From Hyaloraphidium curvatum SAG 235-1 (taxonomy: Eukaryota; Fungi; Monoblepharomycota), in NCBI GenBank assembly GCA_025558095.1, contig JAIVFI010000008.1:248001-312000 (forward strand): 64,000 nt of DNA, given 5' to 3'. The position numbers and the translations under genes are program-made. How positions within the stretch are numbered: the first letter of the stretch is position 1; each line of letters opens with the position of its first letter. Below are positions 52,233 through 59,380 of the stretch, piece after piece. The notes beneath the pieces were generated by a model. That model was not told the DNA's origin. It worked only from the letters and a program-made list of their open reading frames with translations, and did not search any database.

Positions 52233-54013
52233 CTAGAAGCACTTTCTGTGAACGATCGATGGCCCGGCGTCGTCGTACTCCTCTTTCGTGATCCACATCT
52301 GCTGGAACGTCGACAGCGATGCCAGGATGGAGCCACCTGCAGGATCCGGAATCTGAGAAGGCGCTCTCCTCTGCAGTGAGCCCGACGCACCAATCCAAAC
52401 GGAGTACTTGCGCTCCGGCGGGGCGACGATCTTGACCATCATGGTCTGCGGCGCCAGCTGCGAGACCTCATAATGCAGGCGCTCTGCGATACCCTCAAAC
52501 ACTGCGTGGGAGAAGAGTTCAGCATCGGGGGGTAACAGCGGCAGAGACCGACCCACTTGTGGTGCCACCCGCCAGGACAATGTTGCCCCAGAGCTCCTTC
52601 CTGATGTCCACGTCGCACTTCACGATGCTGTCGTGGATCATCTGGTGAATGCCAGGTTGTTCCGTTCCGATCAAACTGGGCTGGAAGAGGGCCTGGAGCG
52701 ATCACGACGGGCAGAATGCTAGGACAGAATCGCAGCTCCGATCGACGGCTGGAACACACCTCCGGCGCGCGGAAGCGCTCGTTGCCGACCGTTATCATCT
52801 GGCCGTCGGGAAGCTCGTATTGTTTCTCTACCGCGCTGGAGTCTTGGGTATCCAACAGTTCTTTGGCGAAGTCTGCGCGCGGGTTTCCAATCAGCCCGAT
52901 TCAGGGAGCTCCAAAGGGCACGATTTGCTCACCGAATGCCACGTAGCCAAGCTTCTCCTTTATGTCCCTCACGATCTCGCGCTCGGCGGTGGTCGTGAAG
53001 GAATACCCGCGTTCAACGAGCAGCTTCATCATGTAGTCCGTAAGGTCCCTTCCGGCCAAATCCAGTCTCGTTATAGCGTGGGGCACCGCGTAGCCTTCGT
53101 AGACGGGTATGACGTGCGTCACGCCTTCGCCGGAATCGAGGACGACGCCTTGGAAGGAGGTCGGTGTCGCTCATGGGCAACACATCACGGAGAGGGGAAC
53201 CTACCGGTGTTTCGACCCGAAGCGTACAGGGCCAGCACCCCTTGAATTGCGACGTACATCTCTGCCGGAGAAGGAACGTGAGTCAGGATCTGCGGACGTG
53301 CAGTGCGGTTGGTGCCCTTACGGGGATGGTTGAATGTCTCGAAGGATATTTGGGTGAGCCTTTCCCGGTTCGCCTTTGGGTTCAACGGAGCTTCCGCTGC
53401 CCGGAAGCGGAATGTTAGCGACTCCGGATTATGGGATAGGGGCCGGACCAACTCAAAAGGATCGGATGCTCCTCAGGAGCGATACGGAGCTCGTTGTAGA
53501 ATGTGTGATGCTACCGCAAGGCAATCAGCATGTCGTGGGAGTGCGGACGGCGCAGATACGTGCCAGGATCTTGTCCATGTCGTCCCAATTGGTGACAATG
53601 CCGTGTTCAATCGGGTATTTGAGAACCAGGAGGCCTCTCTTGGCAACAGCTTCGTCCCCGACGTAGGCATCTTTGGTTCCCATGCCGACCATGACGCCCT
53701 GGCGTGCGGAAACCGCGCGATTGTCCGGTTGTTCGTCAGAAGCAAGCGATGGCCCCCTGCGTCGCCGGGGCACGCAGGGTCCACGCACCTGATTCCTCGG
53801 GCGTCCGACGATGCTCGGGAACACGGCGCGCGGGGCATCCTCGCCGGCGAAGCCCGCCTTGATCATGCCGCTGCCAATGTCGATGACGATGGGCTGGATT
53901 CCTTCCCCCTCCTGGCCGCGCGCGCCGGAGATGGCGGCCAGCGCTCCGGCGGCGAGCGCGGCGGCGCGGGCGATGCGGGCGACGCGGGAGTGGCGCTGGT
54001 GACGGCGTGCCAT
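52233..54013 (-). CDS. Divergent conventional-type actin with an N-terminal signal-peptide-like extension, multi-exon
   Basis: [95 protein letters not shown] and IVHRKCF. Confidence 0.95.
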
Positions 54014-54156
54014 CGCGAATGCAGGAGTCGGGGCCGGTATGGGACACGCCTGACGCAGTGGGCCCTGAGCCCGCCAGCCATGCAGGGAGACCTGTCCCCA
54101 GTCCACAGGTTAATCGCACCCCCGCGAACTGCCGTAATCGGCCTTCGGGCAGCGCG

Positions 54157-57057
54157 ATGGCTGGCCGCTACGCCGCGCTGGCCTGCGCGGTGCTCGCCGG
54201 TCTCGCCGCCGCCGCGGAAGCCGCGCGGTGGACGAACATCGCCGTCGCGGGCGTGCCCCCTTCCGACAATCTGGTGGGCCCCTCCCCTGCCCTGTGCCGG
54301 CCCGGATCTGACGTGCGCTCAGGTGGATATTGCATTCAACCCGGCAAACAAGTTATTCCTCGCCGCCGGCCTCCTCGGCAACATCTACGGTTTCTCAGGC
54401 GCTTCCAGGGCCGCGGCAGGGACGCGCAATGGCACCTTTTCCCTGCAGCTGGACACGGACTACAATATCTCGAGCATCGTGAGAATCACGCGTCGTTACG
54501 GCTGCGGAGCAAAGTGGGCTCATTCCCGATCCCAGAGCTGCCCGGTCGCGGGGCAGTGCATCGCCGCCGGAGCAGGCCGGCCCATCTCAACGTGGCAAGC
54601 CGCGGGATGGTCGATCAGGCAGGCGCTTGCGGTGCCAAGGACGTTTACGTTTTCGTACATTGATTGTGTGGACGCCACCTTCTGCGTGGCGGTCGGCGCC
54701 GACGCCGCGCTGGCCGATGAGACCGGCAAAACCGGAGGTGCGTTGTGGTCACGGGCGCGCCGTAGCTCCACTGATCGTTACCGTGCTATGCAGGCCTGAT
54801 CTTCGTGAGAAGGAACGGAACATGGATTCTCTCTCAAGCTTCGATCCCCGCCATGATCGACGTCACTTGCTCCTCCCGCACCGACTGCACGGCCGTCGGC
54901 GACCTGTCCACCGTTTTGGCATTCAACGGCACCAAGTGGAACCGCATCGTTTTCCCGAATGCCACCTCGGATCCTTTCAAGGTCGTGCAGGTCGTTGGAG
55001 ACACCACGTTCATTTTCCGGACCGAGAGCGCCGCAGACGGCGGCACCGTCGCTCGCATTTACTACTACAGCAAGTCTCGCGGGACCTTCGACATGGTGCC
55101 GCCGTCCGTCCTTTCGGGGGTTTCGGATCTCATCAACATCAACTGCCCGACGAAAACCGACTGCATTGCTCTCGGCCTCGACAGTGACGCTTACGGCAAC
55201 GTCATCTGCCGCTGGAAGGGGCCCTCACCTACGGGCTGGACCAGAGGTGGATCGTGAGGCAGTCTGGCGCATCCAGCAACTGACCCACATCGCCCCGTGC
55301 AGATTCGGTGAATGCGACCATCATCAAGGGCATCTTCAACGCCGTGGAGTGCTCGACGCCGTGCGAGAGGAGCATTTCGGACAGATGCTGCCAGTGCGTC
55401 GCCGTTGGCGAACACGGCGTCGCTGCTGTGACCAGACCTACGCTGGTGAGCGGAACCGTTCCACGTTCGTCCTTCCATGCATCAACCCTGCCCTCCCAGG
55501 CCAGGACCTGCCTTTCGAGCAAACCGGACCCCAAGGCGCAGAGGATCCGCAGCGGTCAGCCGTCCGTCACGACCCCGTTCAAGCCCGAGGTTTTCCTCGC
55601 CAAGCAGGCCCTCGACGCGTCCAAGGTACTTGTGCTGGACCTCGGATCGACCACCGTGCGCGCCGGTTACGCCGGAGACGGCACGCCGCAGTTCAGCTTC
55701 CCGAACGTCTACGTGACGCTAGCCAACGGGACGACCCTGGTGGGCCAGCCGGCGGTCGACTTCCGCAGGCCTACCAAAGCCCCGATCGTCAACGGCATTC
55801 TTTCGGACACGTGAGTCGAGAACGGATGCGCGATCTTGCCGCACCGCTGATCCGCGCATCCCAGGCCCGGCCTCGTCCTCGTGATAAAGTACGCGCTCGG
55901 CCTCCTCGGCGTCCGCAACACGGCCCAGGTCGCCAACAAGCTCATCCTTCTGGTCTCGCCACTCAATACCATGGCGGTGCGCACGGCCTTTTCTGCCAGG
56001 ATCATGACCGAGTTCTCCCCCGCGGCGCTCTGGGTGGGCCAGCCCGCGCTCGTGGAGCCGTTCATCACGGGATCGGGTGCGTCTTTGCTCGTCTTCCGTG
56101 ATCGGCTATTGGCTCATCATCGGCTCGGATGTGCAGTCTCGGACGGGACCCAGGCCCTCTCATTGGATTTCGGACAGACCGCGACCGCCGTTCCTGTCTT
56201 CAAGGACAACGGCAACATCTTCACCTACCTGTCCGCGATCAGGACCACTACGCTCGTCGCCACGAACCTGGACGCCTACATCGCCCGCCAGCTCCGCATC
56301 ACCACCACTCAGGCTGCCGAGCTCAAGCAGGCCCGCAACGTGTTCTTTGCTTCCGTCCCCGACGCCGGCGCATCCAGGGGCAGAACGCCGCCCATCGGCT
56401 TCAGGCTCGCCAACGGCACCAACGTCACCGTCCCCGGCGACCTGAGGTGGACGATCCCGGAGGCGATCTTCAGGCCCGGCATCATCGGCGTCAGGGGACC
56501 CGGGTTCGCCGCCATCGCAGCCGCGGCCGTGGCTGCCTCCCCCCAGTCCTACAGGGCCGGGGCCGTGTCCATGAAAATCGTCGTCGCGGGCGGATCCACC
56601 CTGTTCAGGTCGTTCGGCGACCGGCTGCGCATCGAGATCGGCAAGCTGTCGCCTTGGAACATGGTCAGGGGGAACATCGACAACACCCAGGCGCTCCACA
56701 ACTTCACCAACATCTTGATGGCCCCCGGCAGGATCGGTGCCGCGTTCAGGGGCGCCAGCGGGCTAGGCGGTGGGTTGCCGGTTGCCCACCACCGATCGTT
56801 TCCGGCACCCTCGATCTCATCCCTGCCGGCAGCTGCCCCTGCTGCCGACGGACCCGACTACGTGTTCCCGGCAAACTTCAGCGCATCCGGCGCGGCGGCC
56901 TTTGGGAGTGGGTGCCTGCCGCCCGCGGTGTCGCGCTGTCTGATCTCACACCGACTTGCCAGCCGTGTGCCTGCCGCCCAACTCGGCGATCTGCGCGTGC
57001 GACAATGCGCAGGCCTCGCCATGCAGCGTTTCCGGGAGTGCGTGCGTGTGCACCTGA
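54157..57057 (+). CDS. Secreted multidomain protein: signal peptide, Cys-repeat beta-propeller-like region, divergent actin-fold domain and Cys-rich tail; multi-exon
   Basis: Leader MAGRYAALACAVLAGLAAAAEA; five C..CxAxG repeats; actin motifs VLDLGSTTVRAGYAGD, PIVNGI, LDFGQTATAVPV, IPEAIFRP, IVVAGGSTLFRSFGDRL and AFRGAS; last exon TVCLPPNSAICACDNAQASPCSVSGSACVCT*. Confidence 0.85.
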
Positions 57058-57318
57058 TTGGACCGGCGGCGGTCGCCGGGAAGTATGCTTATTGTGGACT
57101 TTGGGCGAAAGTACGTTTGTGTACAACACAGTCACAGAAAGGAACTGTAGGGGCGCTTGTTGGTTGTCGACATGATCGATAAAGAGAATGCATCTGTACA
57201 CGAGTGACGATGGCGGTATCTTGTTACAGGCGGCAGCACCGGCGCGGCTCCTCCCATGCCCCAGACCCTCCTGCTCCCCGCACCCACGCTCCCGCTCTCC
57301 CTCGGGCCCAGCTCGGAA

Positions 57319-58532
57319 TCACTCGCCCCGCTGCCTCTTGATCTTGACCTTCTCCTCCTCCTGCGGCACCACCGCCTCGGCCGGCTGCTGCAACAGCACC
57401 AGCTGCTGCCCGCCGTAGCCCTCCCCCCCGACCATGACGAACTGCCCCAGCCCGCCCAGCCCCTGCACGCCGGGCGACGACAGGGCGTAGAACAGCTGCC
57501 CGTTGGCGCCCTGAACGAGGTACGGCATCGACACGGCCTGGGGCTGCTGCTGCTGGCTGGGGAAGGTGTAGACGGGGGAGTAGTTGAGCGGGGGGGTGTA
57601 GGGGTCGCCGCCGTGCAGGAGCGGGGTGGCCGTGGCGGCAGGTGGCGGGGTGGGGGGCTTGCTGGCCGGTTCCGTCGGGGGGGTGGAGACGGCGGGCGGG
57701 GTGGCGGCGGGGGAGGGCTTGGCGGAGCGGCGCGGCTTGCGCGGCGCGGAGGGAGCCGCGGCCGGCTTGGGCGGCGGCGGGGCAGGCGCGGGTTCGGGGT
57801 CCTCGGGGGGGCCGGCGGCGCCGGACTCGTCGTCCAGCTCCGAGGGGTCCGAGTTGAGGCACGCCTGGATCAGGTTCTTGCCCTGCTCGCGGGTGATGAT
57901 GGGCTGGAGCTTGGGCGTGGCAAATGTGTAGACATGGCCCGTTTCAGAGGCCACCAGCAGCAGGACCTGCGTGCCCGTGAGGGTTGAGAGCTCGTAGGCC
58001 TGGAAGGCGGCGGCAATGACGGGCGAAAAGGAGGCAAGGAGCGTTAGATGCCATTTCAGAAATGAAAAAGGCCTGGCGACGGCCAGCGACCAGGGAGGGG
58101 TGAATCGACCGAGGGCGGTCGGGCTCGCCGCAGCTGTGCCCTCCCGGTGCGGCACCCATCCGCTGCAGCCCGTCCTTTGGCCGCGGTATGCCTCTCCGAC
58201 CCGTTTTCCGCCACCCGGGACCCGAGTCCGACGACGCACCTTCTTCATGATCCCGGCCTTGCGCTTCGAGAAGGTGATGTGCCTGCGGCTCTTGTCGTGG
58301 ATGTACTCGATCTTTATCTTGCGCCTGCCCTGCCTGGCGGGCTTGCCGCCGCCGTCGTCGCCGTCGGACGAGCCCATGTCGTCGTCATCGTCGGCAGCTG
58401 GGCGGGGGTGGGGGTCAGGTGGGCGGGGCTGCCGGCGGCGGGTGGCCCACGTCTGCCGTTCTGCGCGGCGGCGAGCATCTGGTGCGAGAGGTGCGCGATG
58501 TCCTGCGGCTGCAGCAGCGCCTGCTTGCTCAT
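57319..58532 (-). CDS. MCM1: SRF-type MADS-box transcription factor
   Basis: GRRKIKIEYIHDKSRRHITFSKRKAGIMKK|AYELSTLTGTQVLLLVASETGHVYTFATPKLQP. Confidence 0.93.
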
Positions 58533-59380
58533 CGTCTGCGGCGGCCGTCAGCGGATGGCCGGAGGGGCCGCGCCACGCTCGACGGCAGGCGGCGGCGGGC
58601 GCCCGGACGACGCCCGCGCGCCCGGGGCCGCGACGCACCTCGCGCTGGGGGCACCACGGGTGGTTGCGCGGGCCCAATGGGACCGGAGTTCCACGCTCTC
58701 CGAAAGGGAAAAGGCTCGCTCGCTCGCTAAGGAAACGGGGCTGGGGTGAAGGTGGTTGTGAGGCTGAAAACGATGAAAAGGGAAGGAGGTCGCCCCCACA
58801 CACTGCCCCGCCCCAGCAGGGACCTCTCATGGCCTCCAAACACCGGGGAGAAGGGCTCAATCTGCTTTTATCCGTTTGGATCTCTTGAATATGTGGTGGA
58901 GGCGGTTGACGCCGTCAGGGGCGGCCGCGAGGGGCGGCCGCGAGCCGACGGGTTCATCACTACCACCGAAACCGAGGCGCGCAACGCCAAACGTGTTTCA
59001 AATGGCCTGCAATCGATGGCACCTGGTGCCATTTGGCCTGATGGCCCTTCTTTGGACGTCCAGAGGTGAGTTTCGAGTCGGCCGATATCCAGGTGCCCGG
59101 AAGAGCATCCGGGCCGAGTCCATCACCGCACTGTGGGGCCAATCTGCGAATCTTCTCTGCGTCTTTGATCGATTAGCGGTGCCATGGCCAAGTCTCATGA
59201 TACGCCAAGCGCCCGATGCCTTGTCGCGGCACGGCTCAATGAGTTAGCCGCCCGTGCCGAACACCACCGTCTCCCGCTCCGAGCCCCGCTCCTCCCGAGA
59301 CCGGCTCGTTCACGGCCGTTCCAACGCCGTCTCCCGAATTTGCACCCTTCGCCGAGGCCACCGCGCCCCCTCCGCCCGCG

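Follow-up and report, generated by a model that had tools for sequence, protein, structure and literature searches.

A leader-bearing actin of Hyaloraphidium curvatum with a predicted signal peptide and a head-to-head actin-fold partner

A gene on the minus strand (52233-54013) of a 64,000-nucleotide stretch of the Hyaloraphidium curvatum SAG 235-1 genome, referred to here as the window, encodes an actin that is close to the conventional ones but is preceded by a leader of 33 residues. We propose, with modest confidence, that the leader is part of the translated protein, that it functions as an ER signal peptide and that the actin is targeted to the ER. The window corresponds to positions 248001-312000 of contig 8, and the genome surveyed comprises 31.9 Mb in 55 contigs. 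If the ER reading holds, the window carries one of two copies of a gene pair consisting of a secretory actin and a partner that has an actin fold of its own.

Structure and expression of the leader-actin gene

Exon tracing and RNA joints resolved the leader-actin gene into ten exons with 409 codons and a stop. Exon 1 (53789-54013, 75 codons) starts at the ATG 54013-54011 and ends at the donor GTGCGT (53788); its junction with exon 2 (53789/53698) was confirmed by an RNA contig. The following exons were traced at 53698-53564 (exon 2), 53510-53453 (exon 3), 53396-53322 (exon 4), 53261-53205 (exon 5), 53148-52933 (exon 6), 52872-52760 (exon 7), 52692-52557 (exon 8), 52501-52391 (exon 9) and 52336-52236 (exon 10), the last being followed by the stop codon. 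Spliced RNA contigs from one public run reproduced introns 1 to 6, 8 and 9 to the base (8 of the 9). Intron 2 (53511-53563) is of the GC-AG type, with the donor GCACGT and an acceptor ending in TAG. The use of this GC donor had been suggested in the first-pass annotation and is borne out by a spliced RNA contig that joins 53510 to 53564 and skips exactly that stretch, whose ends read CT..GC on the plus strand.

The leader that the same annotation had described, with a basic n-region, an Ala/Leu h-region and an A-x-G motif before the actin, was recovered in frame from ATG 54013. It had also pointed out that Met is absent from the usual actin start; Q is indeed found in its place, and the first Met further along this frame is the conserved one in GSGM. 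On every point that could be checked, that account of the sequence proved accurate. By reading-frame inspection there is no in-frame ATG upstream, and ATG 54013 is the only usable start. The product belongs to the Pfam Actin family (PF00022). The profile matches exon 1 at residues 37-75 with an E value of 2.8e-12, the exon peptides, searched singly, gave E values of 2.8e-12, 4.3e-12 and 5.2e-15, and the locus stood above the curated cut-off in an Actin profile scan of the organism's own genome. It is not, however, a conventional actin in the sense of a protein with Met directly before the acidic N-terminus and no targeting peptide.

The leader-actin and its divergent partner gene are both transcribed and, over most of each gene, correctly spliced. 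One leader-actin RNA contig spans exons 7 to 1 and ends at 53847, 65 nt short of the acceptor junction (53912/53911) of a candidate intron discussed below. RNA depth is zero in 53924-54843, which corresponds to the GC-rich 5' ends of the leader-actin and partner genes, and no contig lies within 53848-54843. That the contigs do not reach the 5' end leaves some room for a start set in the wrong place. The true start could belong to an unseen exon further upstream, or transcription could begin within the leader; what looks like a leader would in that case be 5' UTR or intron sequence, and its ATG fortuitous. The frame is open upstream to 54106, an out-of-frame ATG occurs at 54081, and the first exon of this genome's conventional actins is a mini-exon of six codons. 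Yet just 143 bp separate the actin ATG from the partner ATG, the candidate upstream donors are poor (e.g. GTCAGG), no downstream start could make a working actin, and both the coding periodicity of the leader and the paralogue described below argue against such an arrangement, to which we give very little credence. One concrete version, the ATG at 54081 combined with the GTCAGG donor, would be in frame; it was rejected on account of its poor donor and of an N-terminus that does not look like that of an actin. The out-of-frame ATG (54081-54079, minus strand) opens a 72-codon ORF that overlaps the actin start and, if the main ATG is used efficiently, limits the possible transcript starts.

The leader and the candidate intron across it

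The leader occupies codons 1-33 (53915-54013, minus strand), its A-x-G standing immediately before Q34. It contains seven Arg, six of them within residues 3-16, plus two His, and the h-region (A17-A31) is an uncharged Ala/Leu stretch composed mostly of Ala; the best 12-residue Kyte-Doolittle mean is 2.18. Signal-peptide calls were made here with crude n/h/c rules, by which a Sec signal has a positive n-region, an uncharged hydrophobic h-region that is 7 or more residues long, and small side chains at -3 and -1. Under this crude rule set the leader has the make-up of a cleavable Sec-type signal peptide (charge +6, a 15-residue uncharged run, the hydropathy mean given above and A-x-G). The same rules were passed by 5 of 357 ATG-started ORFs from this DNA (1.4%).

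In the annotated frame, C is found at 24 of the 32 third codon positions of the leader (permutation p 0.00125), and the leader uses GCC, CGC, ATC and TCC like the remainder of exon 1. Since this bias is present in the CGC-rich first half as well as in the GCC-rich second half, it is not simply the product of one trinucleotide repeat. When codon usage was scored by a log-likelihood trained on the mature actin, a leader so rich in Ala and Arg gave no informative result, frame 0 being merely the best of three. The in-frame coding signature, which in the paralogue takes the form of G at first codon positions, argues for translation of the leader, as do the fact that ATG 54013 is the only usable start and the atypical nature of the one candidate intron that would remove it.

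This candidate is a 99 nt in-frame GC-AG stretch, GCACGC...GGCCAG (53912-54010, minus strand). Were it removed, always or alternatively, the gene would encode an ordinary cytosolic actin of divergent sequence, and the signal-like look of the translated stretch would merely be owed to GC-rich DNA. The sequence ATG|GCACGC...GGCCAG|GAG reads as the first-pass annotation had it, and its splicing would give the product a normal acidic actin N-terminus of normal length. The stretch resembles the GC-AG introns of fungi in beginning with GCACGC and ending in CAG, and a proven GCACGT...TAG intron exists in the same gene: the donor TG|GCACGC is one base off the confirmed TG|GCACGT of intron 2. The acceptor CAG|G is also fine, a CAG occurs at the same spot in the paralogue, the conventional actins of this genome have an intron within their first seven codons, and a cytosolic site would fit the CCT dependence of actin folding. 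However, the candidate differs from such introns, and from all nine real introns of the gene, in length and composition, with 99 nt and a GC content of 0.84 against 53-90 nt and 0.59-0.69. A CTRAY branch motif and a pyrimidine tract were sought in 54010-53912 and neither was found, in agreement with the first-pass annotation, whereas strict CTRAY is present in 5 of the 9 real introns and a near match in the remaining 4. By branch motif, length and composition, then, it is not like the spliceosomal introns around it. The strong third-position C bias runs in frame across the same nucleotides. In the paralogue the matching donor would be GCGGGG, and the leader there is a textbook hydrophobic signal peptide. 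Moreover, "ATG GC" may simply reflect an Ala at position 2, as in both partner genes. We consider removal of the stretch as an intron rather unlikely. The first-pass annotation had offered either a secreted actin or a splice switch between secreted and cytosolic isoforms. The former was strengthened by the periodicity, the paralogue, the partner and the loss of sequon and Cys residues, while the switch gained no support, the intron length, GC content and branch site all being atypical.

Introns lie at other positions in the two conventional actin genes of this genome, both of which begin with a mini-exon of six codons, MEDEVA|gt (L003 1248-1265 and L006 1040-1057), ahead of a first intron of ~235-355 nt. 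In the leader-actin, CAG (Q40) is the codon homologous to the acceptor of that intron, and on account of this position the leader region might derive from an exonised ancestral first intron.

Concerning its destination, the Arg-rich amphipathic first half of the leader resembles a mitochondrial presequence, a possibility that had not been weighed in the earlier annotation. The leader has seven Arg and no Asp or Glu in 33 residues, an 11-residue segment with an amphipathic moment of 0.69, and R32 at -2 from the predicted cut, and it therefore passes for a presequence as well; the matrix processing peptidase would cut at an R-2 site, A-R-G|Q, and the actin would be delivered to mitochondria. Against this, the charges lie within residues 3-16 and the next 15 residues are uncharged (Kyte-Doolittle mean 2.2), an arrangement that matches the n/h/c plan of a signal peptide. 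The leader of the paralogue contains a single Arg and has a hydrophobic core 20 residues long. The partner is evidently a secretory protein, and the loss of sequon and Cys residues suits the ER better than mitochondria. We judge a mitochondrial location very unlikely, and the 15-residue uncharged hydrophobic run together with the leader of the paralogue appears to fit a signal peptide better.

The paralogous actin and the head-to-head partner genes

The Actin profile scan of the organism's own genome revealed two conventional actins, several Arp-like genes and one further leader-actin, located on contig 24. This paralogue also has ten exons, shares all nine intron positions with the leader-actin of the window and has identical exon lengths in 7 of the 10 exons. 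Its exon 1 reads MAGPSVWSVVVRVLAAAVAALAVLGNAAA|QDTGDELPLVIDLGSS, that is, a strongly hydrophobic leader of 29 residues with A-x-A before Q, so that in both proteins a signal-like leader is followed by Q and then by the acidic stretch. The best 12-residue Kyte-Doolittle mean of the contig-24 leader is 2.9, a value reached by 1 of the 357 background ATG-started ORFs; it contains one Arg and a 20-residue hydrophobic core, and G is found at 19 of its 28 first codon positions (p 0.0035). Residue similarity between the two leaders was not above that of shuffled sequences (2137 of 5000 reached the observed score) and only their character is common, the absence of residue-level likeness being usual among signal peptides, though it lends no support by itself. 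In spite of the common gene structure, the two actins show only ~59% protein identity. In the contig-24 copy the nucleotide site is remodelled (GSSTTK, VSGDQ), the leader is more hydrophobic and carries few charges, and the spacer to the partner measures ~590 bp, compared with 143 bp in the window.

N-x-S/T sequons were absent from both leader-actins. The one sequon of conventional actin, at N12 of D-N-G-S, a position conserved elsewhere, is lost in all the relevant proteins: the residue is I in the window actin, L in its paralogue and L in the actin fold of the partner. This genome's conventional actins have five Cys, and each leader-actin keeps no more than C285 and C374 of these; a C284-C373 disulfide has been reported in oxidised beta-actin, which we take as a lead only. 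The loss of the sequon and of Cys residues would be in keeping with a protein that meets the ER enzymes for glycosylation and oxidation, but taken alone these marks are weak because an Arp4-like gene of the same genome also lacks N12.

The start codons of the leader-actin and its partner are divergent and are separated by a 143 bp spacer (54014-54156), presumed to be a bidirectional promoter. The partner gene (54157-57057, plus strand) has seven exons encoding ~850 aa; four of its introns are present in RNA contigs from one public run. The protein begins with a standard signal peptide, MAGRYAALACAVLAGLAAAAEA, which is followed by a Cys-rich propeller-like domain, a divergent actin fold (VLVLDLGSTTVRAGYAGDG...; Pfam Actin E values of 2.4e-8 and 3.9e-11) and a 6-Cys tail. 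In total it contains 11 N-x-S/T sequons and 24 Cys, and the actin fold itself carries N-glycosylation sequons. No membrane span was found before the actin fold. Given the signal peptide, the 11 sequons, the 24 Cys and the lack of such a span, the actin fold of the partner is predicted to be luminal or extracellular. Pfam gave no match for the N-terminal domain (54794-55244). Its language-model features come closest to those of hypothetical proteins from actinobacteria that have Ycf48 (PSII_BNR) or Rax2 propeller domains (score 0.94), a resemblance that serves as a lead only.

The organism's own genome contains exactly two leader-actins, each placed head-to-head with one of only two copies of the partner. 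A secreted actin is favoured by this exclusive pairing with a plainly secretory partner, by the stronger signal peptide of a paralogue with the same intron positions, and by the absence of sequons and the loss of three of the five Cys in the leader-actins. Alternatively, the leader, though translated, could stay uncleaved as a membrane anchor or a plain extension, with the actin domain left in the cytosol at the membrane. Such a topology would permit CCT-assisted folding, and the 20-residue hydrophobic stretch of the paralogue is long enough for a membrane span. It is, however, quite improbable. In the window copy the uncharged stretch numbers just 15 residues and is Ala for the most part; with so much positive charge preceding it, the actin domain that follows would come to face the lumen, as is predicted for the actin fold of the partner. 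Both leaders are also followed by good -3/-1 cleavage sites.

The two partner copies are 84% identical in DNA over 2.9 kb (54191-57058 versus L008 1894-4745), apparently with introns included. Yet the spacers of the two pairs do not align and the adjacent actins are only ~59% identical in protein, a disparity which suggests either gene conversion confined to the partner or very unequal rates, with faster change in the actins. Two alternative in-frame introns of the partner were seen in RNA contigs (55394-55504 and 55445-55498; site 55393-55505), differing by 19 codons of the Cys-rich region. At 56651-56702, within the partner gene, one RNA contig leaves out 50 nt whose ends read CT..AC, as in an intron of the minus strand, opposite to the partner itself; it may represent an antisense transcript or an artefact. 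Just past the partner lies an SRF/Mcm1-type MADS-box gene (RRKIKIEYIHDKSRRHITFSKRKAGIMKK...; 57319-58860, minus strand), and an RNA contig at 57163-57400 has a depth of ~285, far above that of the actin pair.

A proposed route for the leader-actin and its comparison with known systems

According to the reading that we favour, the 33 codons from ATG 54013 would be translated into a cleavable ER signal peptide and signal peptidase would cut after A-R-G33, leaving Q34, probably cyclised to pyroglutamate, in front of the acidic actin N-terminus. The near-canonical actin, predicted to bind ATP, would enter the secretory pathway together with the product of the divergent partner gene, a putative glycosylated, disulfide-rich secreted protein ending in its own actin fold. 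The two proteins may cooperate, for instance as a heterodimer of the actin/Arp kind, and could do so in the lumen, at the wall or in the cell's surroundings. More tentatively, and as something we regard as possible rather than probable, the two duplicated divergent pairs could form a small secretory-pathway actin system in which an actin with a cleavable signal peptide and a glycosylated actin-fold partner fold and work in the ER, at the wall or extracellularly, independently of CCT.

Several observations stand against an ER destination. The n-region of the leader is unusually long and basic for a eukaryotic signal peptide (seven Arg, moment 0.69) and the h-region is mostly Ala. The donor of the candidate intron is one base from a confirmed GC donor, the two leaders are alike only in character, and the RNA contigs are absent from 53848-54843. 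Finally, actin reaches its folded state with the help of CCT, a cytosolic chaperonin on which it depends and which is absent from the ER.

Outside this genome, searches of 1.84 billion representative proteins, a word search of 5.8 billion proteins and searches of metagenome and viral contigs brought up no leader-bearing orthologue. When the exon-1 peptides of both leader-actins were combined into a profile and run against the 1.84 billion representatives, it found only fragments of conventional actins whose upstream frames had been translated through. The 162-aa genomic ORF that begins at the leader-actin ATG had no match above 65% identity. The 342-aa actin-fold exon of the partner had no match at all, and the partner's N-terminal domain had no relative in metagenome or viral contigs. 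Owing to length limits and single-exon queries, these negative results carry little weight for the actin and somewhat more for the partner. Likewise, a literature search found no actin with a signal peptide, and we know of no member of the actin/Arp family proper that has one; the routing of an actin into the secretory pathway has not been previously described.

Actin is regarded as strictly cytosolic and nuclear. If the proposed reading is true, a protein 75-80% identical to conventional actin and built for the secretory pathway, with a co-regulated actin-fold partner, challenges that view. How actin could fold without CCT would then need an answer, as would the role of an actin pair in the lumen, the wall or the cell's surroundings, and the gene would offer a clean natural case of a cytoskeletal protein re-addressed via a new N-terminal exon region. 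If, on the other hand, the leader is spliced out, the gene is merely a divergent actin paralogue with a GC-AG first intron.

Compared with the conventional actins (PF00022; those of the same genome are on contigs 1 and 32), the mature part of the leader-actin shows its 75-80% identity exon by exon and agrees with them in length, with 376 aa against 375. Also retained are the D-loop, HRKCF at the C-terminus and the intron at Q41/G42, and the sequence of the nucleotide-binding loops (DxGSGM and following) is kept apart from the replacements N12 to I and D157 to E. The leader-actin differs from them in its 33-residue leader, in the lack of a start Met at the acidic N-terminus, in the loss of C17, C217 and C257, in a distinct intron set and in being paired with the gene of a secreted partner. 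Among the ER-luminal and extracellular proteins of the broader ASKHA superfamily, BiP/Grp78 and the GDA1/CD39 NTPDases are actin-fold ATPases and nucleotidases that have signal peptides and operate in the secretory pathway. These proteins belong, however, to the Hsp70 and NTPDase families, whereas the leader-actin of H. curvatum is a member of the actin family proper.
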